Shown: positions 31,654 to 64,000 of the stretch, piece by piece
Position numbering within the stretch: the first letter of the stretch is position 1
How the letters are laid out: each line of letters begins with the position of its first letter
Source: Basidiobolus meristosporus CBS 931.73
Lineage: Eukaryota; Fungi; Basidiobolomycota
Assembly: GCA_002104905.1 (NCBI GenBank)
Contig: MCFE01000487.1
Location: forward strand, 3,644-67,643
Length of the DNA: 64,000 nucleotides
Direction of reading: 5' to 3'
Made by a program: the position numbers and the translations under genes
The notes under the pieces: generated by a model
The model's database searches: none
Told to the model about the DNA's origin: nothing
What the model saw: the letters and a program-made list of their open reading frames with translations, nothing else

Positions 31654-31991
31654 TAGAACGCGATTCACATAATATATCTATAATAATCTGTATGCTTAAC
31701 CTCGCAGCGCTATACCCCCATTCCATTGCCAATCCCTTCACCATCTCCAACTCATACATCAATAAATTGCACATAATCATGATTCATATCTTCCATTCGA
31801 TTGTTGCACTGATAAACAGAGATTCAGTTGCTGCAGTCTTAGATTAATCGAGATTGATCTCTACCTTCAAAATGCGATCAGTGAGGAATCGGCTGAATAT
31901 GGCCATCAAATGTCTAGAAATGCCATGTGCATTCGGAAAAATCAGTGTTTCTCGCGGTCCTTCATGTACAATTTTTTCATTCTTGCTCTCC

Positions 31992-34226
31992 ATGTCAGAC
32001 ACAGCTACAGCCACGCAAGAGCCGGCGCCCAGGAAAAAACTTCAACCAGCTTGTAACGACTGCCATAGAAGGAAGGTCAAGTGCACTTTTGAGCGACCGC
32101 AATGTTCCAATTGTAAGCGACGCGGTAACAAGTGTTGGTATCCGGAGAAAAAGCAGAAGAAGCAAGCCACTAAAGCCGACTCCGATTCCTTGGTGGAAGA
32201 AAGGCTTAAGAGATTGGAGAGCTTATTACTAAACGCAAACATACAGCCCGGTGCCAATAGTAGCGAGCCTACTAGCCCTGCTGACCTCACCGCCCCGAAT
32301 GACACTGATTTGAAACACAAAAACGCATCTTTCTTCACGCTTCCTGAAAAGTCCACGAGGGGCCTCGAAACCAATGTGATCCACCACTTGGATCGTCGTC
32401 GGTTTGTCATCAAAGACGGCCAGATGCCTCAACAAGAGATCCGCGAGCGCCTGATTGATCTCTATTTCAAAAAACTTCACCATCTGCAGCCGCTAATTCA
32501 CCCCAAGACCTTTATGGAACGCGAGAAGCAAGGAAAAAATTCCGACCTTTTGATATTGGCTATTTGCGCCACCAGTTCGATTTTCCTGGAGGAGGTGGAG
32601 GGAGTATCGGACACGTCCTGTTGCTCAGGAGAGCCCTTCGCCTCGAGAGCGCAGCACATTATCCAAGAAAACCTGATGAAGCCGTCTCTAGAGACCATCC
32701 AGGCACTAGGCACGCTTTTCGTGTACGAATTCACCGCCGGAAACTTTGGCATCAGCCAGATGTACCTAGAATTGGCGTTCCATTACTTGAAGCTGTTCAG
32801 GATCTATCGTCTGGACGAGGACTACCAGGACGATACGCTGCTTACCCCAAGCGACTGGGTAGAGAAAGAAACCAAAAGGCGAATTTTCTGGTTGACCGTG
32901 ATTAAGGATCGCATATTTAGTTGTGAGATGGGTATACCACAGCTGGTCGACCTATTTGATTGCGAAGTGCAGCTGCCGTGCGAAGAATATTACTGGGAAA
33001 ACAGCTTGCCAATCTTCAACGCCGAGAAGATGGACTCGGATGAGGAAGAAATGGCCCTTGGCATGTCGCTGAAGCCCACAAACGCCACCTCTTCGCAGTC
33101 CAACCAATTCAGTATCAAGCTGAAGATTATTCTGATACTCGGCCAGATCAGTCGCTATGCAAATCGACCGAAGACCAAACGAATTCTCTCCAAACGCTCG
33201 CTAACTGCTCGCTTCACCTTACTCGAGTATGCACTTTCCGCGTGGTGGCAGCATTTGCCGGCCGATGTGAAGTCCGAGAGCGGTCTGAATGCTGACACCG
33301 CTGCATTCGAGTTGATCCAACACTACAAAGTTCTTTATTACGGGGCGACAATCTTATTGCATCGGACGTATCTCGCACATATGGCCCATCTATTCAACAG
33401 CGCCTCCCCTCCCCTCCCCTCCTCCTCCTCACAAGACACTAATGTATCTGTTCCGGAATCATGCCTAACTTCAATGAACAAATGCACATCCACTGCATTT
33501 GCTATTACACAGATCATCACCCACTTCAATTCGTTCAACCATTCGTATTTCAACTTATTCTCGTCACACGCTGTATTCCTTTCATCCACCATTCATCTAA
33601 ACAACATGTTCTCCTCCACCGGCGAGCTTGCACAACGATCCAAGGAGGCGTTCGACCTCAATTTCAAGTTTCTCCAAGATATCCGGGGATTCCGACCACT
33701 AACAGAGTTTCAGCTGGAGGTGCTCAACAAACTAAAGTTGGTCTGCTCGAATATCAATCGCCGTACGGACTTGAGGCAACATCCAGGCACTATATCGATG
33801 CAGTGGATTGCTCCGACATCAACCGGGGCCATCACATGGCAAGATACTTTGGAGGAGGCATTCAAGCGGTATTGTAGCACCTCCTTCCGGGATTTCGCTG
33901 CAACCTCCTCTGACCCGGTAGATAGCTTCCCCTCCTCTCCCGACAATCCGTTTAGAGTTGGGTTTTCGCAAGACGTTATTCCTCTTCCCGAACCCAACCC
34001 TGACTTGAATGGGCATCAACAATGCTTTACCTACAACCCCGGTGATTACAACTCCAGCCAAGCCACTGCATTTTCTTTGGACAACAATTGGAACACGAAT
34101 CCTGATCCACTCAATTATGACCAACTACTGATTGAGAAAATCTACCAGGAATCTGGCCTTTCATCGGACTCGTTCGACTTTTTCCCACTGTTCAATAATA
34201 TGAACTCAACAAACACCCAACTCTAG
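31992..34226 (+). CDS. Zn(II)2Cys6 fungal transcription factor with middle homology region
   Basis: ACNDCHRRKVKCTFERPQCSNCKRRGNKCWY; ETIQALGTL; EKETKRRIFW. First ATG in good position is 31992. Confidence 0.93.
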   Translation: MSDTATATQEPAPRKKLQPACNDCHRRKVKCTFERPQCSNCKRRGNKCWYPEKKQKKQATKADSDSLVEERLKRLESLLLNANIQPGANSSEPTSPADLTAPNDTDLKHKNASFFTLPEKSTRGLETNVIHHLDRRRFVIKDGQMPQQEIRERLIDLYFKKLHHLQPLIHPKTFMEREKQGKNSDLLILAICATSSIFLEEVEGVSDTSCCSGEPFASRAQHIIQENLMKPSLETIQALGTLFVYEFTAGNFGISQMYLELAFHYLKLFRIYRLDEDYQDDTLLTPSDWVEKETKRRIFWLTVIKDRIFSCEMGIPQLVDLFDCEVQLPCEEYYWENSLPIFNAEKMDSDEEEMALGMSLKPTNATSSQSNQFSIKLKIILILGQISRYANRPKTKRILSKRSLTARFTLLEYALSAWWQHLPADVKSESGLNADTAAFELIQHYKVLYYGATILLHRTYLAHMAHLFNSASPPLPSSSSQDTNVSVPESCLTSMNKCTSTAFAITQIITHFNSFNHSYFNLFSSHAVFLSSTIHLNNMFSSTGELAQRSKEAFDLNFKFLQDIRGFRPLTEFQLEVLNKLKLVCSNINRRTDLRQHPGTISMQWIAPTSTGAITWQDTLEEAFKRYCSTSFRDFAATSSDPVDSFPSSPDNPFRVGFSQDVIPLPEPNPDLNGHQQCFTYNPGDYNSSQATAFSLDNNWNTNPDPLNYDQLLIEKIYQESGLSSDSFDFFPLFNNMNSTNTQL

Positions 34227-37352: not shown

Positions 37353-37425
37353 GGGGCGTTGGCCTAATGGATAAGGCATCAGACTTCGGATCTGGGGATT
37401 GTGGGTTCGAGTCCCATGCGCCTCG
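37353..37425 (+). tRNA. tRNA-Arg(TCG)
   Basis: Full cloverleaf: acceptor GGGGCGT/GCGCCTC, D-arm GCCT/AGGC, anticodon loop CT-TCG-GA, T-loop TTCGAGT. Confidence 0.96.
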
Positions 37426-37758
37426 TATTTTGTGCTTCATCGTTAGATGTCTCGAACTAGAGCCATAATAGCATTTAGCTCTGCAAATGCAGTTGTATTA
37501 TATATGAAACTAGCAGTAATCATCATCAGTGTCCTTGAAATGCTCGTATCTCATGTCCTTTCATTTACTTCGTATTAGCGTGACTATTAAAAACAAGTGA
37601 ATTACCTAGTGAACAAGAAAAAATATAGCAGAGCACCTGCATTTGTAGGAAATATAATATATTCTCTGTTTAGGAAGTAATAATTCTTTGTGAAAGTACT
37701 GTTTATTAAGTTGTATAACGAGGTTAAGTCTTTGGTATCTAGAGGGTATCTTAAGTCT

Positions 37759-38139
37759 CTAATAGTCGTCGTAGTCATCACCATGGCCACGGCCACCACT
37801 ATACTTCCTTCTTCCATGGCCATTGCCATCGCCATCATAGTCATCATCGTAATCATTGCCATACTTCTTTCTTTTTCCGTGACCGTGGCCATCGTAGTCA
37901 TCTCCATCATATCTCCTTCTTCCACGGCCATTACCATCGTAATCATCGTCGTAGTTGCCACCTCCACCGCCGCCATATCTCCTTCCGTGACCATTGCCGT
38001 CATAATCATCGTCATAGTCACCGCCACCACCATGACCTACCCCCTTGTAGTCAGGATCGTAAGAGCGCTCAAGGATTGAAGCATTGATAGCCAACGCAGC
38101 GGAGATGACAAGGAGAAGCTTTGCAATGGAGTATTTCAT
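37759..38139 (-). CDS. Secreted Gly/Asp/Tyr-rich repeat protein, copy 1 (126 aa)
   Basis: Signal-peptide-like MKYSIAKLLLVISAALAINA, then LERSY and YDDDYDGNG(H/R)G-RR/KR repeats. Confidence 0.85.
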   Translation of the reverse strand: MKYSIAKLLLVISAALAINASILERSYDPDYKGVGHGGGGDYDDDYDGNGHGRRYGGGGGGNYDDDYDGNGRGRRRYDGDDYDGHGHGKRKKYGNDYDDDYDGDGNGHGRRKYSGGRGHGDDYDDY

Positions 38140-38676
38140 CTTGAGATGGTGATTTGAAGGAGTGAACGACTGGATGTATTTATAGGATAATGAGAGTAGA
38201 CGCATGCAGTAGCACACTTTATGAGTGTTGTTGATTTGTATCGGTGGACTGCATAGCGCTAACAGTGATGTGTGATCTCATCTTATGAAGGAGTTGATTT
38301 ATGCCAAAACTTGCGCTCAACATGTGCTCGGATTTGATTGATATGTCAACTATGGTTACCGCTATTTCCATGTTTAATGGCTCAATCACGTAGAATCATT
38401 CAAAGGAGATAGTGTTCTGCCCTGAGCTGGACTTTGGAGTGTTATGAAATCCAGGCCAGTTCCTGTCCTTCTGTTTGGTGTAACAAGGTCTGTCCTTTAT
38501 TTTAGCGTAGGATCTACTTTTTTATACATTTCTCGATCATTTGCATACAACTTGTCTTACTTTAGCCCATCAGTCTTTGATCATCTTTGATGATTTTTGG
38601 TGTTGACGCATCTCTATATGCGACAACTTGCTGCCTGTTCTGGTCGGGATTCAGACTTTCATAACAGGAGAGTGAA

Positions 38677-38749
38677 GGGGCGTTGGCCTAATGGATAAGG
38701 CATCAGACTTCGGATCTGGGGATTGTGGGTTCGAGTCCCATGCGCCTCG
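38677..38749 (+). tRNA. tRNA-Arg(TCG), identical second copy
   Basis: Same 73-nt sequence as 37353-37425. Confidence 0.96.
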
Positions 38750-38754
38750 TTTTT
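38750..38754 (+). terminator. Pol III terminator
   Basis: TTTTT immediately after the tRNA. Confidence 0.7.
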
Positions 38755-38983
38755 GTAATTTCAACACCATAATCGAAATAGAGTCAATAACACTGTTTGA
38801 ATTATTCGCCAAGGTCACCATTTCGAAGTAAATCAAATTATTTGGATATTTCAATTTCCAACTTGAAAGTTTTAGCGTTACATTTTGATACCCTTATAAA
38901 TAGCCACAATTCTGAACATGTCATGTGTAAATGTTGGTTTATTGTGTATTTGGTATTTTGTACCAAGAAGGTATCTCAAGTCT

Positions 38984-39352
38984 CTAATAATCGTCGTAAT
39001 CATCACCTCGGCCGCCACCACCATACTTCTTTCTTCCATGGCCATTACCATCATAATCGTCGTCGTAATCATTGTCATACTTTTTTCTTCTTCCGTGACC
39101 ATGACCATCGTAGTCATCCCCGTCATATCTCCTTCTTCTTCCACGGCCATTACCATCATAATCATCATCGTAGTCGTTACCATACTTCTTTCTTCCTCCA
39201 TGGCCATTACCGTCATAATCATCGTCATAGTCACCGCCACCACCGTGACCTACCCCCTTATAGTCAGGATCGTAAGAGCGCTCAAGGACTGAAGCATTGA
39301 TAGCTAGCGCAGCGGAGATGACAAGGAAAAGCTTTGCAACGGAGTATTTCAT
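38984..39352 (-). CDS. Secreted Gly/Asp/Tyr-rich repeat protein, copy 2 (122 aa)
   Basis: MKYSVAKLFLVISAALAINASVLERSYDPDYKG..; paralog of copy 1 with indels in the repeats. Confidence 0.85.
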   Translation of the reverse strand: MKYSVAKLFLVISAALAINASVLERSYDPDYKGVGHGGGGDYDDDYDGNGHGGRKKYGNDYDDDYDGNGRGRRRRYDGDDYDGHGHGRRKKYDNDYDDDYDGNGHGRKKYGGGGRGDDYDDY

Positions 39353-40339
39353 GTTGATATAATGGTTGGAAATAATCAGAAGATCAAGGCATTTATACAT
39401 TTTACAATGCAAGAATATGCAGAAGCACGCCCATCAGTGTTTGCTGATCACACGTACAGTGTTGAGGAGAGATGTCCGTAGCATTCATGGCTTTAATCTA
39501 GTGCGCATTTAGCAGTTTTATAATGCGATATGTGTTGTTAGTTAAGCACACTCAGTACCAAACTACCTGTGCTGACAACTCAGCCTGTAAGCTGTACATC
39601 AATTAGATGCTTCCCAACTTGTGCTATACTTGCAGTCATGGCTCTTTCTGCAGGTGACTTGAGTTTGATATGTCCAGATGCATCTTATGTTTTGAAATCA
39701 GATTTTCTTGAGTGCCAATGGCATGCCTGTGGTAATGTAGGTTTTCTGGCCAACGAGAAGCAGTAGTCAATCATATAGTATTGTGGCATATTTCTAAATG
39801 GAATTCTGAGTCAGTTTACTTCAGGCCATTACACTGTGCAATATTCCTAGTAATGGCCAGACATTTCTTTGTAGCATATTAACCAGCAATAGTAGTAGCA
39901 GTAGTAATTAAAATCATCGTTGGTGAAGCGTTTCAGCAGATTGAAATAATAGGAAGCAAAGTATAACGTGCTTTATGTTTGCTTGCATAGACTCACGGTG
40001 AAATGCCACTCTCAATTTGCGAGATAAATATATTCAAGAACCTGAATACGGGGTAACCCAAGGAGGAGGATTTTAGTGGCGAAATTTGTCAGGTATTTAG
40101 TTCGGATATATTCGGATATATTGTATTAGGTAACCACTCCAAATAGATAATCCACAATTTCCTTTTATGACCCACTGTTCTTCGCGGAGGTTACTAATGG
40201 GGGAATGTTTTATTGATATGACGAACGTTCTCTAGTTGGAATGACAAGAAATATTTTATATGTTCTAGATGTATGGCAAGCATTTCTATTTAAATAGGCC
40301 TGTTAGCATTTTCTATCACTGGAAACGAATCTAAGCAAA

Positions 40340-42271
40340 ATGAGACATGTAATTATTGGAGGTGTAGCCGGAGGAGCAACAGCAGCCGCCCGATTGAGAA
40401 GAGTGGATGAGACGGCTGAGATCATTTTATTGGAGAAGGGTCCCTATATCTCTTACGCCAACTGTGGTTTGCCGTACTATATCGGCGGAGTCATTGCCAA
40501 ACGCGAAAAACTGCTGCTGCAGACGCCAAAGTCGTTTGGTACGCGTTTCCGTATTGACGTCAGAATAGAGAGCGAAGTAATTGCCATTCATCCAGAGGAT
40601 AAAAGCCTGACCATTCGTAGGGCAAATGGAGAAGAATACAAAGAAACTTACGACAAGCTGCTACTATCACCAGGTGCCAATCCCGTGAAGCCGCCATTGG
40701 AGGGTATCAATTCGGAAGGCATCTTCACCCTGCGCAACGTAGAAGATACCGACCATATCAAAGCGTACATTGCTGAGAAACAGGTAAAGCGTGCCGTAGT
40801 AGTAGGTGCCGGCTTTATCGGGCTGGAGATGGCGGAGAACCTGCACCATGCCGGGGTGGCTGTTTCCGTAGTCGAAATGGGCAACCAGGTTATGGCTCCT
40901 ATCGACTTCTCTATGGCAGCGTATATCCATCAACACTTGACACAAAAGGGCACATCTTTATATCTTGAAGAAGGTGTTACCCACTTCCAGCGTACAGACA
41001 GCGGCATCACTGTTTTCCTGAAAAGTGGCAGGACCATTCCTGCCGATATGGTGTTACTCTCTATCGGCGTGCGTCCAGCAACAGCATTGGCGCAACAGGC
41101 CGGCTTGAAGTTGGGAGAGACGGGTGGCATCTGGGTAGATAAACACTTGGAAACCTCCCAAAAGGATATCTATGCAGTGGGTGATGCTATTGAATATCCT
41201 CATCCGTTGACCGGGAAACCGTGGCTCAACTATCTTGCCAATCCGGCTAATCGCCAAGGTCGTATCGTAGCCGATAACATGGTATTTGGCAACACGGTTT
41301 CTTATGAAGGGGCTATCGGCACTTCTATCGCCAAAGTATTCGATATGACTGTGGCTTCTACAGGACTGGCAGCCAAGCGTTTGAAGCAGTTGGGAATGGA
41401 GTATCAGAGTTCAGTTACCCACTCCTCTTCCCATGCAGGCTATTATCCGGACGCTTTGCCCTTGACGCTGAAGCTAACCTTTCACCCTAAGACTGGTAAG
41501 CTTTACGGTGCGCAATGTGTGGGCTACGAAGGAGTGGACAAGCGTATCGACCAAATAGCTGGAGTCATCAAGCATGGCGGGACGGTATATGACCTGACGG
41601 AAACTGAGCACACCTATGCACCCCCTTTCTCATCTGCCAAAGATCCTATAGCCATTGGTGGATATGTTGCCTCCAATATAATCAGCGGGGCTATGCCGGC
41701 TATTTCCTGGCGCGAACTCGTTGATGAGAAAGACCAAGTGATGATGTTTGATACCCGTACTGCCGAAGAACATTCATTTGGCTCCATTCCGGGGGCTGTC
41801 AATGTCCCCTTGAATGAATTGCGTGAGCACATTGCTGAAATCCCGATGGATAAACCAGTTGTTCTATTCTGTGCCATAGGACTGCGCGGCTATCTAGCTC
41901 AGCGCATCTTGATGGGACGCGGTTATCGCAATGTTCGCAACCTAATCGGCGGCTATAAAACTTATTCCACCAGCGTAGCTCCTATTGCAAAGCCTTCTAC
42001 CGATGTTCCTTCACCACAAGAGGCTGGTGAGGCGACAAAGATAAACGTATGCGGGTTACAGTGTCCCGGGCCTATCATGCAGGTAACAAAAGCGATGAAC
42101 AGCATTGCGGTTGGCAAACGTGTTACAGTCACGGCAACTGATGCAGGTTTGGTTCGTGACGCCTCTGCCTGGTGCGACACTACAGGCAACAAATTGATAT
42201 CAAAGCATGAAGAAAAAGGTCGCTACACAGTTGTTCTAGAAAAAGGTGAACCCGCCACTAAACAGAATTGA
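40340..42271 (+). CDS. Bacterial-type CoA-disulfide/persulfide reductase - rhodanese - TusA/SirA fusion (643 aa, intronless)
   Basis: FAD loop IIGGVAGGATAAARLRR; redox Cys SYANCGLPY; NAD(P)H loop GAGFIGLEMAE; dimerisation YAPPFSSAKDP; rhodanese VLFCAIGLRGY; TusA CGLQCPGP. Confidence 0.93.
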   Translation: MRHVIIGGVAGGATAAARLRRVDETAEIILLEKGPYISYANCGLPYYIGGVIAKREKLLLQTPKSFGTRFRIDVRIESEVIAIHPEDKSLTIRRANGEEYKETYDKLLLSPGANPVKPPLEGINSEGIFTLRNVEDTDHIKAYIAEKQVKRAVVVGAGFIGLEMAENLHHAGVAVSVVEMGNQVMAPIDFSMAAYIHQHLTQKGTSLYLEEGVTHFQRTDSGITVFLKSGRTIPADMVLLSIGVRPATALAQQAGLKLGETGGIWVDKHLETSQKDIYAVGDAIEYPHPLTGKPWLNYLANPANRQGRIVADNMVFGNTVSYEGAIGTSIAKVFDMTVASTGLAAKRLKQLGMEYQSSVTHSSSHAGYYPDALPLTLKLTFHPKTGKLYGAQCVGYEGVDKRIDQIAGVIKHGGTVYDLTETEHTYAPPFSSAKDPIAIGGYVASNIISGAMPAISWRELVDEKDQVMMFDTRTAEEHSFGSIPGAVNVPLNELREHIAEIPMDKPVVLFCAIGLRGYLAQRILMGRGYRNVRNLIGGYKTYSTSVAPIAKPSTDVPSPQEAGEATKINVCGLQCPGPIMQVTKAMNSIAVGKRVTVTATDAGLVRDASAWCDTTGNKLISKHEEKGRYTVVLEKGEPATKQN

Positions 42272-42917
42272 AGCATTTTGCGTGGCTACAAAAATGCTCC
42301 ACCTTCCTATAACGTTAGTTTAGTTAGTTTCCCAATTTGGGATTATATAAAGTCATTTGCAATCATGCCATTCCATTCCATAAATGTATGAGGCTCTTGT
42401 GCTCACTAAATCCAGATCAATTATGCTCCCGATATTCTCAAAATAGTACATAATTGACCAATTCGTCCCTTGCTTCAAGATCTTGATATGGATTGAAAAT
42501 GAAAATGAATGCTAGCCAAAGAAGGCAATTGAAGGCTATACTTCACCTAATGTAATTCTCAAATGTTACAAATACTTTCCTCGTACACAAATAGAACAGC
42601 TAATAGTACTAATTGGTTGGATATTTGTCAGCCACTAGAAAATATCATATGATAAACTGGCTCTTTTTGTTATGAAAGTCTTGCAGATTGTAAGGTACGT
42701 GAAGTAAATGTAGGTTTTTTGATTTTCACATCATTAATATTGCATGTAAAGGGGGTCTGGAAACTTTAGTAAGCTCTGGCAAGACAACATGTAAAAATGT
42801 TTATGAAGATCCCACAAATACATGTTGTAAGAGTTTTTGCATTATTGGAAGTGATGGGAAGTACATCTATATCATGTGGTTCTTGCTAAATGACTGATTG
42901 AATGTAAAAGTTGTATC

Positions 42918-43302
42918 TGTTGTAAGAGTCTTGGAGATATTGGAAGTGATTGGGAAGAAAAGTAGATTATGTGGTTTTCACTTAATGATATATTGAATGC
43001 ATAAGTAGTATATATACTTTACATGGTCTTGGGATAGCAAACACATAGAATAGATTTTACATGGTCTTGGCATTACAAACACGTAGAATAGGTTAAGAAA
43101 GGTCCCAAGAACATGTGTGCAAAGTTAGGGGCTGTTTGGACAACTTATTCAATTTTCATATTCTGGAACCTGATATGTGGGTGAAAATAATCCAAGTAGA
43201 TCCCAACCAGAAATTTGGTCATTATTCTCTGAGATTTGTAGGTAATGATCAAAGTGACTAAGTTAGGTGGATATTTAGTTGGAATTCCAAATTTCTACAA
43301 CA
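42918..43302 (-). repeat. Family A 3' LTR (inverted, with an internal duplication); older LTR scraps at about 42760-42917
   Basis: TGTTGTAAGAG...TACAACA followed by the reverse-complement PPT CTCCCTCTC. Confidence 0.88.
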
Positions 43303-46140
43303 CTCCCTCTCTACTAAATGCTCATATTGACTAGTCCTAATTTTGACCTAAGATATTCAAGTTTGTCTCTAGCTTATGGTTTGGTAAATAGGTTGGCAAT
43401 CATTTCATCTGTAGGACAGTAAACCAAGTTAGCTAAGTTAATCTCTATAGCTTCACATATGAAATGATGTCTAATATCTGTGTGCTTAGCTCTAGCATGA
43501 AAAGTTGGATTTCTAGCTAATTGTATACTTCCTTGATTATCTTGAAATAAAGTAATAGGCATTTTTTGACATAAGCCTAAATCTTTAAAAAGCTTTCTTA
43601 ACCACATTGCTTCTTTTGTAGCTTCACATGCTGCCATGTACTCTGCCACTGTGGTAGCAAGTGCTATGGTTATTTGCTTTCTTGAATTCCTTGAAATTGC
43701 ACCTTTACTATAAAGAAAGGTGTATACTCAGGTGGATCTTGTGACTTCTAAATTTTGTCCCCAATCAGCATCAGAGTATCCCACTCAATGTTATGCCAAA
43801 TCCTTATAGGTGTACCTTAAGCAGATATCAGCAGTTCCTTTTAGGTATATAAAAATCTGCTTAACTGCTGCAATATGATCAGATCTGTAGTTCTGATTAT
43901 GCTGGCTGACAACTCCCACTGAATATAAAATATCTGGACATGTTCCAAGCATGATATACATTAGACTGCTGACCATAGATTGATAGGGAAAGTCAGGGCT
44001 TTCAGATGGCACCAGGTGCTCTTGATTTGGCTGAATTTTGATCAAGTTAAGGTTTGTCTCCATTAGGGTAGCTGCTGGTTTACAGTCTTCCATTTGGTAC
44101 TGCTTTAGTATATATGGAATATGCTTGGATTGGCTTGGGGTAATAGTCTGTAAGCTTCTGTCTATGGAGAACTTGATCCCTAATCAGTAAAGGAGTTCTC
44201 CCAGATTGGACATCTTGAACTCCTCAGATAGGCTGGATTTAGTCTCTTCTAATGTTTCTAGGTTATTGGTGGCAATAGTAAAGTCATCCATGTATAGAGC
44301 TAGTAGAGCCAGATTTGCTCTATCTGGCTTATAGAAGAGAGCATAGTCAGCAGTACTCCTTTGCAAACTCAAAGATTCCAAATAAGAATATATCTTGCAA
44401 ATCCCAGCTCTTGATAATTGTTTGAGACCATGTAGTAACTTTTTAAGCCCAAAGAACAAATGGGGGTAATCCTGGCCAGCAAAGCCATCAGGCTGGTCTA
44501 TACACATGTTATTATCATATTTTCCATTCAAAAATGCAGTTTCTTCATCCATTTGAAGTATAAAAACAAATATTTGGCAGTAATAGTTAATACACATCTG
44601 ATGGAATTAAACTTGGCTACTGGTGCAGAGGTCTCATTATAGTCATACCCATTTGTTTGAGAGTATCCTTTGGCCACAAGTCCTGCATTTTATCTTTCAA
44701 TCTTACTATTAGACTTGTATTTTGTCCTGAAGACCCAACTGCATACAATCAAATTTTGATTGATTGGTAATTTGACAAAGTCTCAAGTTTGATGTTCCAT
44801 CAGTGCCGGATAATCCTTGGTCATTGCAGATCTCCAAAACCTTGTCTAAGGGCTATTTAAGGCCTCATTTACAGTCTGGGGTGCATCAATATGGACTGAA
44901 TAGGCATAGGCTGAGTGTGTACCCTCATTGATATAGTAATTTGGGCCATTTCTGGTCCAGTTGAATCTCCTAGTTTGCAATACTGGAATGATCACACCAA
45001 GGATACTCATAGGTGCTGATACAGGCTGAACCACAGTTGCAGAGTCCTCTGGAGAAAAAAAATCTTCATTCTCTTGCTCTGATTCAATCCTGACTGTTGG
45101 TGTACTTGAAATCAGATTTTTGTCATCATTTGATGTCAATTTTTGGGAATATCTTGATTTTTCATCAAAGAACACATCTCTGGCATTGATCAGCTTCTTT
45201 GCTTTGGCAGTGTAGGGTCTGTATGCTTTACTCTCATTGCAGTAGCCTAAAAATATGCCTTTTACACACTTTGGCTCAAATTTTGACTGATTACCAGGCA
45301 GTTCCTTGGCAAATACTTAGCACCTAAACATTATTAGATGTTCTGCACTTTATCAGTAAGCGTACCATGCCTCAAGTGGAGTAGAATCATGTAGTATTCT
45401 GTTATTACTCCAACTTTCAAGAAATACAGCTGTGGCAACTAATCTAACTTAATACTAAAAGATAATTTTGATGATGGACCATATATCTTGCCATATCCAT
45501 TTTCTTGCTGATTTGCACCTTCTGCTATCCCATTTTGCTATGGGGAGTATAGTACAGTAGTCTCTTGCTTTATCCCATGAATCTTGCAGAAGTGAATGAA
45601 GAGCTTTGAGGAATGTTTTCCACCATTGTCAGAACATATTTTCTTGATTTTTTCACCAGTTTCTCTCTCCACCAAGGCTGTAAGCTCCTTGAGCTTAGAG
45701 AGAGCTTCTTTCTTTCTCTCCATGAAGTAGACCCATGTGTAACTTTTATAATCATCAATAAAAGTGGTTTAACAACACATTCTGCCTAAAGACAAGTTTT
45801 GCATTGGTCTGCACCAATCTGAGTGAATTAGATCTAATTTCTTTGTAGTTTTGATTCACCCAGAGCTCCTGAACAGTTGTATGGCTTTTTCCTCATTTAT
45901 GCAGGCATCAGAGTGCTTCAAATCAGCTCACAGAGCAATTTTTACCCTGGGAACTAGCTGATCTCTGATCAATTTGTGCAAATATTCAAAATTGATTTGT
46001 CCAAATTGCCCGTGCCAAAACATTGATGCTTCCTCATTTAAGTAACTTATAATTGATTCCTGAAAGGATAGAATATAGTCAACTTTTATAGATTCTGATC
46101 TTTGATACTCAAAACAATATGGGCATTAATTTGATCTGTT
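43303..46140 (-). mobile_element. Degenerate copia family A internal region (GAG-pre-integrase, IN, RT, RH)
   Basis: Broken ORFs matching the first element (AEYMAACEATKEAMWLR, LYMDD, SDNGG). Confidence 0.92.
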
Positions 46141-47960: not shown

Positions 47961-48100
47961 GTGCGGGGTGAAACTTACATCACTCAATAGTCATGTCTGC
48001 AGTCAAAAGAACTCACAAAAATTCCCTTGGTGGTGACCAGGCTACTTGTGGCAACGTCTCCGGTAACCCAACAAAAGTAGCAGCCTCCAACAACATCAAG

Positions 48101-48400
48101 ATGAGCCATGTGGACCGGGCGCACCTTCATACAGATCCGGTGTATTGCTACAACTATGTGGCTAAGTTTGTGGATTTCTCCAACAAAGATGTCCAGGCCA
48201 TCAAATCGGTGTCGGAGAGACTGGCCCCTCTTGGTGGTGTCATAGTGGACACCGTGTATGACAAGCTCAGAGCATTCGACATCACTTGGGAATCCATGGC
48301 CAAACGCCACGGGGGGTACGCTGGCGAGGTGGTTGAGAAAGTGCAGGATCTCAAGGTCGACAGCTCCCAGATCAAGTACAGAAAAGATATGCTGACCCAA
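48101..48400 (+). pseudogene. Fungal protoglobin-like globin, N-terminal half only
   Basis: MSHVDRAHLHTDPVYCYNYVAKFVDFSNKDVQAIK..VDTVYDKLRAFDITW..QIKYRKDML fits fungal protoglobin-domain proteins; no convincing C-terminal exon found downstream. Confidence 0.7.
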
Positions 48401-49637
48401 GTGGGAAGACATCGCATATTCATTTTTGAACGTAAATTGGCGTTGGAAATTGAAAATGGGTAGATTTTATGGTTCTCTGGTTTCCACGAATTTAGGGTAG
48501 TGTCTAGTAAGGAAGAAAAGACCAATACCCGAGGTATGGTAAGAGGTATGGCCAACATATTGAAGAAAAAAACTAGAATGCACGCAACAAGCGAAACAAT
48601 CCGAATAGGTCATGCTCTTTGGATTACATTTAAGAGGTGTCGCTGCAAAGTTGACAATGAGGATTTATAAATACGCTAGTGAGTGTCACGCGGGCGTGGC
48701 ACACTCACACAAGTGCAGGTATTCTTACAAGCGCAAATCATCTTGACCTTCTGGCACTCACATTACTTCGGCAGTAACCACCACAACAGCAGATTTTGGC
48801 AGCTTTTGTGATTTCAAGATACCTGTCAATAATAAAGTATGCAGATAGCAAGAGCGATTGCCCTATTTGAAACCTTGTTTCAAAGTGCCATGACGCCAAA
48901 GCCTAGTCATGTTAACTTTGAATTTTGTACTGATTATGCGAAGTTGTAAATTTGAATATTGTTCTCAGATCAGCAATTGACTCAATCCGGGTTGCAATCC
49001 GGATGAGCCTGGGTGGTTATAATCACGATTAAGTAATGAACCCCATTTACATCACAAAGAAAACTATATGTTATTTAAAAATAACAGGTAAAAGTTTCCT
49101 ACTGAGAATTGATGTTTCCCCAGCTAGGCTGAGCCTAATTAAATCCACCGACTCTATCGTCAGTATTGTGGGATGTTATGATGGGGTGAATTGTGAATTC
49201 TTCTACGAATCAGCTTACTGGCCATGTGAATGAGAGTTGGTCCACTCATCAGAATATTTATGGTATGGTTGGATCATCTATTTGTTTTGGTCTGAAGTTT
49301 TTTTGTTTCGCCAGTATGTTACGATTTAAATCCTACCTAGTCACTACCGATCACTTGAACACTACTGATCGAACACCTTTAATTACACACTGACGATCAA
49401 TCACACTCAGTGATACACACATTATTCAATACATCTTGGACCCTTCTTTTGGAAGCTTGCTCTACGTTATCGGAAGCTCTCCTCCCGAGACTATCTCTAT
49501 ACAAACCCCTCTAAACACTATCAATAAAGCATCAACCTTTCACCAGCTCATCAATCATTCAGATAACCCTCTCCGATTCTTATTGACTATCCCCCGATCC
49601 TTCTGCACTTACCCTTGATTCATAACCAATAAAATTG

Positions 49638-51216: not shown

Positions 51217-52710
51217 ATTGGATTTAATACCGTCAAGCAATGAAACGAATGAGTAATGGACAAGGGTATGGCTGGCCTACTTGATCACTTTTATATGGAA
51301 CTGTTTAGTGCGCACACCCACAGAAGGTAATCACTTTCAAACCGGCTCATTCCAGTCCAAAAGGTCATTCTATTGTAGGTTTCAAACGATAGAGTGTACT
51401 AGTTTCTCCACATTGCAAGTCGATCACATATAACATGAAGCCAACAAAATTCATATGCAGAATAATCATGATATTAAATACGGAGCACCACCTTGCCACA
51501 ACACCTCTTCCAACAACCGCTTCTCACACACTAGTACAAATCGGGGTTAAGGCTATTCAGTAGTAGCTACAACTAAGGGTTTATGGAGTGCTTGCTGTGC
51601 TAGACATATCCAATTCATTGACATTACTAGTAATGAGTAAAGAATTGAATAAATCTTCAAACATACTCTTGTAAAGTGATCACTTTGCAACATGGTTCTG
51701 TCACCCTATATGGGTGTATACACTAGGTTGGGTCATGATTGTGCTATAAGAGTGCCCAAGTCACTAAGTCTGAATAGAGTGTTGACCTGAGTTGTATCGT
51801 AACACATGCACAAACATCATTGGAACTGACTTTGTTCTGTTGTGGCTCAGTATAGTAGCTGCCTCGGGCTGAACTGTTTACTTCATTCAAGATGCTATTG
51901 TACGGCGCATCCATAACAAAGCATTAGAAGCTACACAGGAAGATGACGAGTCTAACTTATAAGCATTTTGTACTGACGGTAAACAAGCACTTGTTAGATT
52001 TCCCATGTGTCACCACGAGTTTTCTTCCTAGTTCAATTCACTCCTACTCTTTGCCAGCTACTAATAGTGATGGGACTTTTCAGAGCATGACGTGGGATGT
52101 TGGGCGGTACAAAGTGAGAATGAAACTAGCTCAATACATAATACAGCGCCCGCCAATGCGTAGGCGTTTGTAGGTGGATAAGGTACTCACTAAAGCAAGA
52201 GATTTCTTTCCCAGAATTTCAACTTGCAGGAGTAACGTCTGTTAATGGGTATACAAGATGAGCTGTTGCTTGTTGTAGAGTGTGGTACGTTGATAAAAAA
52301 AGATGCTGTCATTGGAATGCCTGCTTTCCTTGAATCAAGCTTTTCTAGGTAGCAGCAATCAATTTCATTGATTTTGCCGAAGTTGCAAATGAGCTAATGA
52401 ACATAGATGTCGATGATGTTTTGCTGAGTAGCGCATTTCAAATCAGTTCATTGAGGTATACTACAGTATATATACATACATATATATAATAGGCATAGCA
52501 GACTTATTCTACATGACACAATCGTTATTTGATTGAAGCTGGTTGAAAGTAATAACAAGTCTGTACTATGGATTCCACGTTCAGCTTCCATACTGGTATT
52601 GACATTCGGTCAAATAGAGTTATTGCATAAGATTAGCAAGGTTGGGATTTATTTCCAGTTGTCTATAGATATCTAAAAAACTGCTTGGATATAAGTTTTG
52701 ATGGCTGAGC

Positions 52711-54105
52711 TTAATACTTGTAGAAGTCGCCACTCCCATGCCCTTCATATTCTCCACCACCTCCACCGTTGCCGCCATATCCACCGCCGCTGCCGCCACC
52801 GTTTCCACCATATCCTCCGCTGCCACCACCGCCATTTCCACCATATCCTCCACCACTACCGCTGCCGCCACCGTTTCCACCGTATCCTCCGCTGCCACCA
52901 CCGCCATTTCCACCATGTCCTCCGCTGCCACCACCGCCATTTCCATCATATCCTCCACCGCTGCCGCCACCGTTTCCATCGTATCCTCCGCTACCACCAC
53001 CACCGTTGCCACCATATCCTCCGCTACCGCCACCGCCACTCCCACCATATCCTCCGCCGCTGCCGCCACCGTTTCCACCGTTTCCTCCGCTGCTACCACC
53101 GCCATTTCCACCATGTCCTCCGCTACCACCACCACCGTTGCCACCATATCCTCCACCGCCGCCGCCACCGTTTCCACCATATCCTCCACTACCGCCACCG
53201 CCGCTCCCACCATATCCTCCGCTGCTGCCGCCACCGTTTCCACCGTATCCTCCGCTGCTACCACCGCCATTTCCACCGTGTCCTCCGCTACCGCTACCGC
53301 CACCGCTACCGCCACCGCTACCGCCACCGCCGCTCCCACCATATCCTCCGCCGCTGCCGCCACCGCTTCCACCGTATCCTCCGCTGCTACCACCGCCATT
53401 TCCACCATGTCCTCCGCTACCACCACCACCGTTGCCACCATATCCTCCACTGCCGCCGCCACCGTTTCCACCATATTCTCCGCCGCTGCCGCCACCGTTT
53501 CCACCATATCCTCCGCTATCACCACCACCGTTTCCACCATATCCTCCGCTGCCACCACCGCCATTTCCACCATATCCTCCACCGCTGCCGCCACCGTTTC
53601 CACCGTATCCTCCGCTACCGCCACCACCGTTGCCACCATATCCTCCGCCGCTGCCGCCACCGTTTCCACCGTATCCTCCGCTGCCACCACCGCCATTTCC
53701 ACCATATCCTGCACCGCTGCCGCCACCGTTTCCACCGTATTCTCCGCTACCACCACCACCGTTTCCACCATAACCTCCGCTACTGCCACCGCCGTTTCCA
53801 CCATGTCCTCCGCCGCTGCCGCCACCGTTTCCACCGTATTCTCCGCTACCACCACCACCGTTTCCACCATAACCTCCGCTACTGCCACCGCCGTTTCCAC
53901 CATGTCCTCCGCCGCTGCCGCCACCGTTTCCACCATATCCTCCACCGCTACCGCCACCACCGTTTCCTTCATAGCTATCACCGTGAGCTACACCACCACC
54001 TTCACCAGCGTAATCTTTGGTGTTGTATCCGCGCTCGAGAACAGCAGCACTCGCCATGGACAAGACTGAAGCTGCAAGAAGGAGTTTGATCGAAGAGATT
54101 TTCAT
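52711..54105 (-). CDS. Large secreted glycine-rich (GGNGGGSGGGY repeat) structural protein, 464 aa
   Basis: Signal-peptide-like MKISSIKLLLAASVLSMASA, then LERGY and dozens of GG(Y/H)GG(N/S)GGG repeats; TATAAA on the minus strand at about 54145-54150. Confidence 0.88.
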   Translation of the reverse strand: MKISSIKLLLAASVLSMASAAVLERGYNTKDYAGEGGGVAHGDSYEGNGGGGSGGGYGGNGGGSGGGHGGNGGGSSGGYGGNGGGGSGEYGGNGGGSGGGHGGNGGGSSGGYGGNGGGGSGEYGGNGGGSGAGYGGNGGGGSGGYGGNGGGSGGGYGGNGGGGSGGYGGNGGGSGGGYGGNGGGGSGGYGGNGGGDSGGYGGNGGGSGGEYGGNGGGGSGGYGGNGGGGSGGHGGNGGGSSGGYGGSGGGSGGGYGGSGGGGSGGGSGGGSGSGGHGGNGGGSSGGYGGNGGGSSGGYGGSGGGGSGGYGGNGGGGGGGYGGNGGGGSGGHGGNGGGSSGGNGGNGGGSGGGYGGSGGGGSGGYGGNGGGGSGGYDGNGGGSGGGYDGNGGGGSGGHGGNGGGGSGGYGGNGGGSGSGGGYGGNGGGGSGGYGGNGGGSGGGYGGNGGGGGEYEGHGSGDFYKY

Positions 54106-63393: not shown

Positions 63394-63813
63394 TTAGTTG
63401 ACATCCTCCAACATTTGCTTGCTCACAAGCATATGGTAGAACCCACGCTTAGCTAGAAGTTCTGTGTGGGTTCCCAGCTCAATCACCGTTCCGTTCTTGA
63501 CAACCACAATGAGATCGGCATTCTGAACGGTTGAGAGTCTATGCGCTATAGTGATGGTAGTGCAACCTTTGGATGCGCTATCCAGGGCAGCTTGAACTAC
63601 CTTCTCACTTTCAGAGTCCAAAGCTGAAGTGGCTTTGTCCAAAAGAAGTAAGGTTGGGTTACGGATGATCGCCCAAGCAATGGCTACGCGCTGCTTCTGT
63701 CCACCAGAGAGCTGGGTTCCCTTTTGGCCAACGTTGGTGTTGTATCCATTAGGAAGATTGATGATGAATTCATGGATGTTGGCTGCCTTAGCTGCCTCTT
63801 CAATGCGGCACTG
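63394..63813 (-). pseudogene. ABCB/MDR transporter C-terminal NBD fragment, cut by the telomere
   Basis: [38 protein letters not shown] (Walker B E to K), [15 protein letters not shown]; the upstream gene is replaced by telomeric repeats. Confidence 0.93.
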
Positions 63814-64000
63814 TAGGGTTAGGGTTAGGGTTAGGGTTAGGGTTAGGGCTAGGGTTAGGGTTAGGGTTAGGGTTAGGGTTAGGGTTAGGGTTAGGGTTAG
63901 GGTTAGGGTTAGGGTTAGGGTTAGGGTTAGGGTTAGGGTTAGGGTTAGGGTTAGGGTTAGGGTTAGGGTTAGGGTTAGGGTTAGGGTTAGGGTTAGGGTT
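63814..64000 (+). repeat. Telomeric (TTAGGG)n array (chromosome right end)
   Basis: About 31 units running to the window end, with one CTAGGG variant near 63849. Confidence 0.98.

Follow-up and report, generated by a model that had tools for sequence, protein, structure and literature searches.

The window analysed here, 64,000 nucleotides of contig MCFE01000487.1 from the fungus Basidiobolus meristosporus CBS 931.73, carries at positions 40340..42271 of its forward strand a gene for a predicted sulfur-redox enzyme of bacterial type. The gene is a single open reading frame (ORF) with an ATG start, 643 codons plus a stop and no introns. Its product (P0241) is assigned as a CoADR-rhodanese-TusA oxidoreductase (CoADR, CoA-disulfide reductase; CoA, coenzyme A) from the ORF listing, from Pfam, from 85% identity to Bacteroides proteins of 811-821 amino acids and from the presence of the exact protein in NCBI and eukprot. 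It is already annotated in GenBank (ORY02540.1 and relatives), and the 90% cluster of the window protein contains ORY02540.1, ORX75525.1 and the 537-residue ORX64446.1, all from CBS 931.73, together with the 667-residue KAK9700965.1 from Basidiobolus ranarum.

All the folds of a class I pyridine nucleotide-disulfide oxidoreductase, that is, the flavin adenine dinucleotide (FAD) and NAD(P)H Rossmann folds and the dimerisation domain, are present in the fungal protein. This reductase core spans residues 1-445 (40340..41674, forward strand) and is recognised by Pyr_redox_2 (residues 2-285, E 1.5e-61), Pyr_redox (E 7e-16) and Pyr_redox_dim (residues 331-432, E 1.4e-14), by TIGR03385 at 483.7 bits and by its match to the solved structure 3ICR; its nucleotide-binding motifs are GGVAGG at residue 7 and GAGFIG at residue 156. 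A rhodanese domain follows at residues 460-543 (41717..41968, forward; PF00581, E 1.1e-15), which aligns with the rhodanese domains of 3ICR and 3NTA, and then a TusA-like sulfur-carrier domain at residues 567-635 (42038..42244, forward; PF01206, E 9.5e-17), matched over its full length (profile positions 2-70 of 70). The sequence-only reading of this stretch had described the ORF and three catalytic cysteine motifs, and each could be located: ANCGLP at residue 40 holds the redox Cys42 (codon 40463-40465), which aligns with the SxANCGLPY-motif cysteine of 3ICR and 3NTA; FCAIGLR at residue 510 holds the rhodanese active-site Cys511 (codon 41870-41872) in a six-residue CxxxxR loop, C-A-I-G-L-R; and QCPGP at residue 574 holds Cys575 in the CPGP motif of TusA, whose second cysteine is Cys571. 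All four cysteines are invariant across 75 Bacteroidales orthologs. Since the N-terminus starts directly with the FAD-binding fold, the protein is predicted to be cytosolic.

The same reading had called the gene intact, which is true of its reading frame and not of its architecture, because the fourth domain of the donor is missing from the fungal gene. A four-domain architecture has been described for Bacteroides fragilis BF638R_0572 (PMC6158253), and the donor-side database matches carry a C-terminal DsrE/DrsE_2 domain in precomputed Pfam annotation. Of the 75 Bacteroidales orthologs that were translated, 73 stop at 805-832 amino acids, one ends at the end of its contig and one reads as disrupted. 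Homology of the fungal gene to the bacterial ones extends from within a few bases of the ATG to position 42256, inside the TusA-DsrE linker, and this position is the 3' breakpoint of the acquired segment. Beyond it lie four new codons (T-K-Q-N) and the stop (42257..42271, forward), as delimited by tblastn and blastn end points and by the C-terminal alignment. The B. ranarum protein stops eight codons further along the same linker, before the DsrE domain; as both species are cut in the same linker and lack DsrE, the clipping is ancestral and shared.

Pfam found no DsrE domain in the ORF, and tblastn (E<=1) found no DsrE remnant at any fungal locus. A database search for a separate fungal DsrE gene returned bacterial and metagenomic fragments only, which, with the sparse names used there, is no proof of absence. 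Database matches of 659-667 residues without DsrE were considered as fungal orthologs or as natural three-domain bacterial proteins and were rejected, being Bacteroides stercoris-like sequences with a frameshift or a break in the linker. In Bacteroides sp. GD17 and Bacteroides fluxus (loci L002 and L006), a 118-residue MarR gene lies ~60 nt downstream, a placement that matches the published BF638R_0572/bmoR arrangement in B. fragilis (PMC6158253). The MarR gene is absent from the window, where the ORF is followed on its 3' side by unique AT-rich DNA and then by long terminal repeat (LTR) sequence.

The gene was almost certainly acquired from Bacteroides by horizontal gene transfer. Its best matches outside Basidiobolus are Bacteroides proteins of 811-821 residues, with 83-85% identity over residues 1-639, and the closest DNA is that of Bacteroides sp. 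GD17, at 78% identity. The fungal homologs found come from B. meristosporus and B. ranarum alone, and Bacteroides stands next in the match list. In a careful maximum-likelihood tree of 49 rows, with the root placed on Alistipes, Tannerella and Odoribacter, B. ranarum and two B. meristosporus copies form one clade (support 100/99, starred) that lies within a 19-row Bacteroides clade (95/93, starred) with B. fluxus, B. clarus, B. muris, B. heparinolyticus and GD17; the latter is itself nested in further starred Bacteroidaceae clades, and a quick tree of 77 rows was concordant. The topology thus indicates a single transfer from a donor within the genus Bacteroides. The sequence-only reading had suggested a gut anaerobe as the source and had named, as signs to the contrary, near-100% identity to a bacterium and a broad vertical distribution among fungi; the phylogeny bears it out, with identities of 78% (DNA) and 85% (protein) and with Basidiobolus as the only fungal genus in which homologs were found. 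Because B. ranarum carries the same gene, the transfer is older than the split between the two species, which represent the two major clades of the genus (bioRxiv 10.1101/2025.03.31.646025). A plasmid was considered as the vehicle and rejected, since Bacteroidales plasmids hold only distant family members of at most 61% identity.

The CBS 931.73 assembly holds at least three distinct intact versions of the gene, as paralogs or haplotypes. One locus, L001, is syntenic with the window, with ~4% divergence over 4.9 kb. A second, L083 (MCFE01001009.1), shows 96.3% identity to L001 and 97.5% to the window, and its ORF is a mosaic of both: within positions 9700-12200 of L083, the upstream region and the first ~80 codons are window-like, and most later variant sites are L001-like. 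Such a pattern points either to exchange among the copies, by recombination or gene conversion, or to a haplotig that is chimeric. A third, L084 (MCFE01001205.1, 10001-11985), corresponds to the L001 copy at 99.5% over 10.9 kb and is the source of ORX64446.1, the 537-residue "intron-containing" model; its ORF carries four single-base indels, mostly in homopolymer runs, and the locus may represent a redundant contig that was left unpolished, not a gene in decay. The idea that L001 represents another strain was dropped, as the window's own protein lies in the same assembly, and L001, L083 and L084 are therefore taken as paralogous or haplotype contigs. Among the short-read contigs of X2, one of 231 nt shares ~90% identity with the first 136 nt of the ORF (40340-40475), its other 95 letters being unlike the window upstream; it may come from yet another copy, more diverged and with a 5' flank of its own.

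The sequence-only reading had proposed a dN/dS test, and purifying selection is evident in both comparisons, between species and between copies. Between B. meristosporus and B. ranarum, dS is 0.67, dN 0.063 and omega (dN/dS) 0.094, with 203 synonymous against 89 nonsynonymous differences (binomial p 4e-61). The window and L001 ORFs differ at 19 positions, 13 of them synonymous (omega 0.14, p 4.8e-5); their dS of 0.029 comes near the 0.026 divergence of the intergenic DNA upstream, and the ORF as a whole is 3-6x more conserved than its flanks. It is thus very probable that a functional protein is being maintained.

This constraint is unequal among the domains. Interspecies omega is 0.046 for the CoADR core, 0.12 for rhodanese and 0.15 for TusA, compared with 0.02-0.05 for each domain in pairs of Bacteroides, and TusA is still non-neutral between the fungal species (p 3e-7). 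Columns that are invariant in the bacteria have changed in B. meristosporus at 1-2 of 242 positions in CoADR, 1 of 34 in rhodanese and 5 of 31 in TusA, the last an excess over the rest of the protein (5/31 vs 3/276, Fisher p 3.5e-4); the corresponding counts in B. ranarum are 1, 0 and 4, and TusA positions 570 and 604 are altered in both species. Taken together, the domain omegas and the invariant columns indicate that constraint on the reductase-rhodanese unit is nearly as tight as in the bacteria, and that TusA, its cis partner lost, is relaxed or shifting but remains far from neutral.

The closest solved structures to the fungal protein are 3ICR (E 1.4e-174) and 3NTA (E 4e-158), both aligned over residues 3-545, and 8A56 (E 7.5e-153). 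In the last of these enzymes, Enterococcus faecalis CoAPR, the NAD(P)H-dependent mechanism needs C42 and the rhodanese C508, and bound CoA bridges both sites (PMC9405070). By analogy with these relatives, reduction of persulfides or other sulfane sulfur seems somewhat the likelier chemistry for the fungal enzyme, and a role in handling sulfide and persulfide in an animal gut is plausible. A second possibility is that general defence against CoA disulfides and thiol oxidation is the main role, with clearance of persulfides secondary. The best NCBIfam models are indeed CoADR equivalogs, although the protein scores under the cut-off of every one of them (TIGR03385, 483.7 bits vs 578.8; NF010037, 365 vs 394; NF007123, 357 vs 458), and the CoADR core is the most constrained part of the protein, but the rhodanese Cys511 and both TusA cysteines are likewise kept under purifying selection, which speaks for sulfane-sulfur handling. 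Deletion of BF638R_0572 in B. fragilis raises sensitivity to diamide, and the redox-linked repressor BmoR controls the gene (PMC6158253). Set against that phenotype, the nearest solved relatives are rhodanese-fused persulfide and polysulfide reductases. Fungi, moreover, already control disulfides through glutathione. We therefore regard a main role in thiol defence as unlikely, at perhaps half the weight or less that we give to persulfide reduction.

Upstream of the ORF lies a core-promoter block (40280..40326, forward strand) that is conserved with B. ranarum. It contains the TATA box TATTTAAATA at 40287-40296, which the sequence-only reading had pointed out correctly, together with the AAAATG start context. 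A local alignment of the 300-nt upstream regions of the window and B. ranarum covers 48 columns with a score of 25; in 500 shuffles the mean was 13.6 and the maximum 22, so that none of the 500 reached the observed value. The 3' flank showed no comparable conservation with B. ranarum. Among the sequencing runs that hold the stretch, none is on record as RNA. In one of them, X3, coverage is confined to 40344-42086 and to the coding portion of the small gene next to it; the library kind of X3 is unrecorded, and such coding-only coverage is suggestive of a transcriptome.

Could the ORF be a neutral, unexpressed passenger that looks conserved only through homogenisation of subtelomeric copies? Its place in a repeat-rich subtelomere, the L083 mosaic of window and L001 versions and the lack of a run recorded as RNA would all fit such a case, but gene conversion cannot yield an omega of 0.09 at a dS of 0.67 between two species, nor the 203 synonymous against 89 nonsynonymous differences (p 4e-61) that separate them, and the frames are intact and the TATA block conserved in both. 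This explanation is thus very improbable, and retention by purifying selection is preferred.

The junctions of the gene with fungal DNA are well covered. Short-read contigs of X1 and X2 span both of them (39910-40475, 41158-42474 and 41459-42840), with a contig word depth of ~425-630 over the ORF and ~450-490 in the unique flanks. X1 and X2 may derive from the assembled strain and, as the window protein lies in the same CBS 931.73 assembly, are probably not independent of it. The same junctions occur in four contigs of that assembly, and the B. ranarum copy is embedded in DNA of 33-35% GC beside a copia fragment. The chimeric contig that the sequence-only reading had kept in view is thus not what was found: contigs bridge both junctions, and in the assemblies of two species the gene lies within fungal sequence. 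Bacterial contamination or a chimeric contig, with the ORF lying outside the fungal chromosome, is excluded, for although an intronless gene 85% identical to that of a common gut bacterium might invite the suspicion, its DNA diverges by 22% from every sampled Bacteroides, it is clipped and has no bacterial neighbours, its junctions recur in four contigs and, with a common promoter block, in a second species' assembly, and short-read contigs cross both junctions at flank depth.

The surroundings are fungal, as had been noted from the letters alone: tRNA and secreted-protein genes on the left, LTR sequence on the right. Two tRNA-Arg genes lie upstream of the ORF at 37353-37425 and 38677-38749, and small ORFs with signal-peptide-like N-termini at 37759-38217 and 38984-39412, the latter on the reverse strand. 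The second of these, the immediate neighbour (38984..39412), is repeat-rich and belongs to a local tandem family with repeated matches to the gene array of L001. Along the left flank (37353-39412, and 1-9011 of L001), tandem small repeat-rich genes, whose products have signal-peptide-like N-termini and are rich in Gly, Asp, Tyr and His, alternate with tRNA-Arg genes, the family counting 2 units in the window vs 7-8 at the paralogous loci. Further off in the window are a Zn2Cys6/Fungal_trans factor (31854-34226), an MFS transporter, C2H2 genes and copia reverse transcriptase/integrase sequence. No bacterial-type neighbour gene was detected, the ORF alone matching bacterial loci at the DNA level within 39500-43000, and tblastn with three Bacteroides orthologs as queries found no further part of the Bacteroides protein elsewhere in the window; both results agree with the claim that the gene stands without bacterial neighbours.

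On the 3' side, an 8-bp inverted repeat capable of forming a hairpin lies directly after the stop (arms 42272-42279 and 42291-42298). Word depth climbs ~1000-fold from 42808, and high-copy LTR/retroelement sequence (42918..43800, strand not assigned), recognised by word depth and by matches to several other window positions, bounds the unique 3' flank. An ORF at 47993-48463 (forward), 5.7 kb downstream of the CoADR gene, contains a partial Protoglobin domain (PF11563, E 3e-9, profile 6-68/158) and is 95% conserved with 16924-17900 of L001, a stretch with a called Protoglobin gene; the window ORF probably represents exon 1 of a globin gene of the sensor type. A GC-rich block at 52620-54105 (GC 0.64, GC skew -0.6) with long multi-frame ORFs on both strands matches 19097-21072 of L001 at many offsets and is therefore a tandem-repeat array. 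A telomeric (TTAGGG)n run occupies the end of the window (63813..64000, forward; 29 matches vs 0 expected), 21.5 kb from the ORF, and for this reason the label of subtelomere given to the locus is right.

These results are best accounted for by the following history. A four-domain Bacteroides gene encoding a CoADR core, rhodanese, TusA and a DsrE-like domain passed once to the ancestor of B. meristosporus and B. ranarum, as a segment running from about the start codon to the linker past TusA. As the captured segment ends in that linker, the DsrE-like domain and the MarR repressor gene were left behind. A fungal TATA-box promoter now lies upstream, and the three-domain gene has been kept by purifying selection and copied to at least three loci or haplotypes in CBS 931.73, the window copy being subtelomeric. 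By homology to CoAPR, CoADR-RHD and Npsr, the product may be a cytosolic FAD enzyme in which Cys42 and Cys511 work as a pair and bound CoA acts as a swinging arm between them, with NAD(P)H driving the conversion of CoA persulfide (perhaps polysulfide or CoA disulfide) to CoASH and H2S. Such an activity could protect the CoA pool without oxygen, an advantage in an animal gut rich in sulfide and low in oxygen, while TusA might serve as an accessory sulfur-carrier domain whose original DsrE partner is gone.

As a whole, a clipped Bacteroides sulfur-redox gene that was captured once, retained, copied and reduces persulfides is a likely explanation of the locus. Several points weigh against it. With regard to chemistry, the best NCBIfam models are those of CoA-disulfide reductases, if all below cut-off, the sole reported phenotype of a Bacteroides ortholog is the diamide sensitivity cited above, a matter of general thiol-oxidation defence (PMC6158253), and the role of a TusA domain without a DsrE partner is unclear. 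With regard to expression, there is the lack of runs recorded as RNA, and the X3 contigs carry the majority variant of the copies and not the window allele. Some of the copies may be haplotigs or redundant contigs, and gene conversion, as in the L083 mosaic, may account for part of the likeness between their ORFs. Finally, composition lends no support: the ORF has 49.6% GC, Bacteroides orthologs 44-52% and fungal ORFs 37-55%, so that GC, GC3 and overall composition do not discriminate donor from host and were dropped as a signal of transfer.

Basidiobolus is already known for large-scale uptake of gut-bacterial genes, most published accounts giving counts or dealing with secondary-metabolite genes. 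Among the genes of this strain, Tabima et al. (2020; PMC7466969) reported 806 candidates for horizontal transfer (5%), most of them without introns and of host-like composition, with CFB/Bacteroidetes among the donor groups. The present gene has the features used there, namely bacterial best matches, a fungal neighbourhood, even coverage, an intronless frame and a composition like that of the host; it is not named in the main text of that study, in which neither rhodanese nor sulfur occurs (0 occurrences), and a literature search found no paper tying Basidiobolus to rhodanese, persulfide or CoA-disulfide terms. What the locus adds is the clipping of a domain, an age for the transfer, a conserved acquired promoter, unequal constraint among domains and multiple copies. 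Because donor genus, a breakpoint inside a multidomain gene, the gain of a TATA promoter, measured selection and later duplication can all be read at one locus, it affords a stepwise view of a bacterial ORF becoming a eukaryotic gene. The unequal constraint amounts to a natural experiment on TusA after removal of DsrE, and the locus provides a testable hypothesis of how a gut-passaging fungus handles sulfide and persulfide stress without oxygen. A bolder proposal, which we consider doubtful and put forward tentatively, is that Basidiobolus is the first eukaryote known to have a bacterial-type, O2-independent CoA-persulfide reductase, cut from four domains to three on capture and later fixed and multiplied near the ends of chromosomes for protection of the CoA pool in the sulfide-rich herptile gut, with TusA, deprived of DsrE, re-adapting to a new fungal partner.

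Comparison with known systems places the fungal protein among several bacterial types. CstA of Staphylococcus aureus is a multidomain sulfurtransferase of rhodanese-TusA-DsrE order that is not known to include a reductase core. Its relay layout recurs in the C-terminal half of the Bacteroides donor, and of that layout the fungal protein keeps the first two modules and has lost DsrE. CoADR-RHD of Bacillus anthracis (3ICR/3ICS/3ICT) and Npsr of Shewanella loihica (3NTA) resemble it in their FAD-, NAD(P)H- and CoA-dependent two-cysteine design; unlike it, both are two-domain bacterial enzymes without TusA, and Npsr is tied to sulfur respiration, which is not expected of a fungus. CoAPR of E. faecalis (8A56; PMC9405070) likewise combines a CoADR core with rhodanese and has equivalent cysteines, C42 and C508 there and C42 and C511 in the fungus. 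It differs in that it lacks TusA, is more distant in sequence and is regulated by CstR in a cst-like operon, and its activity is established where that of the fungal protein is predicted. The closest parallel is the Bacteroides BF638R_0572 type, with which the fungal protein shares the CoADR-rhodanese-TusA order, all catalytic cysteines, 83-85% identity and its phylogenetic placement. In contrast to that type, it lacks the ~170-residue C-terminal DsrE/DrsE_2 domain and its locus lacks the adjacent MarR repressor gene, and the fungal gene is further set apart by its eukaryotic TATA promoter, by four C-terminal residues that are new and by a shorter rhodanese-TusA linker.

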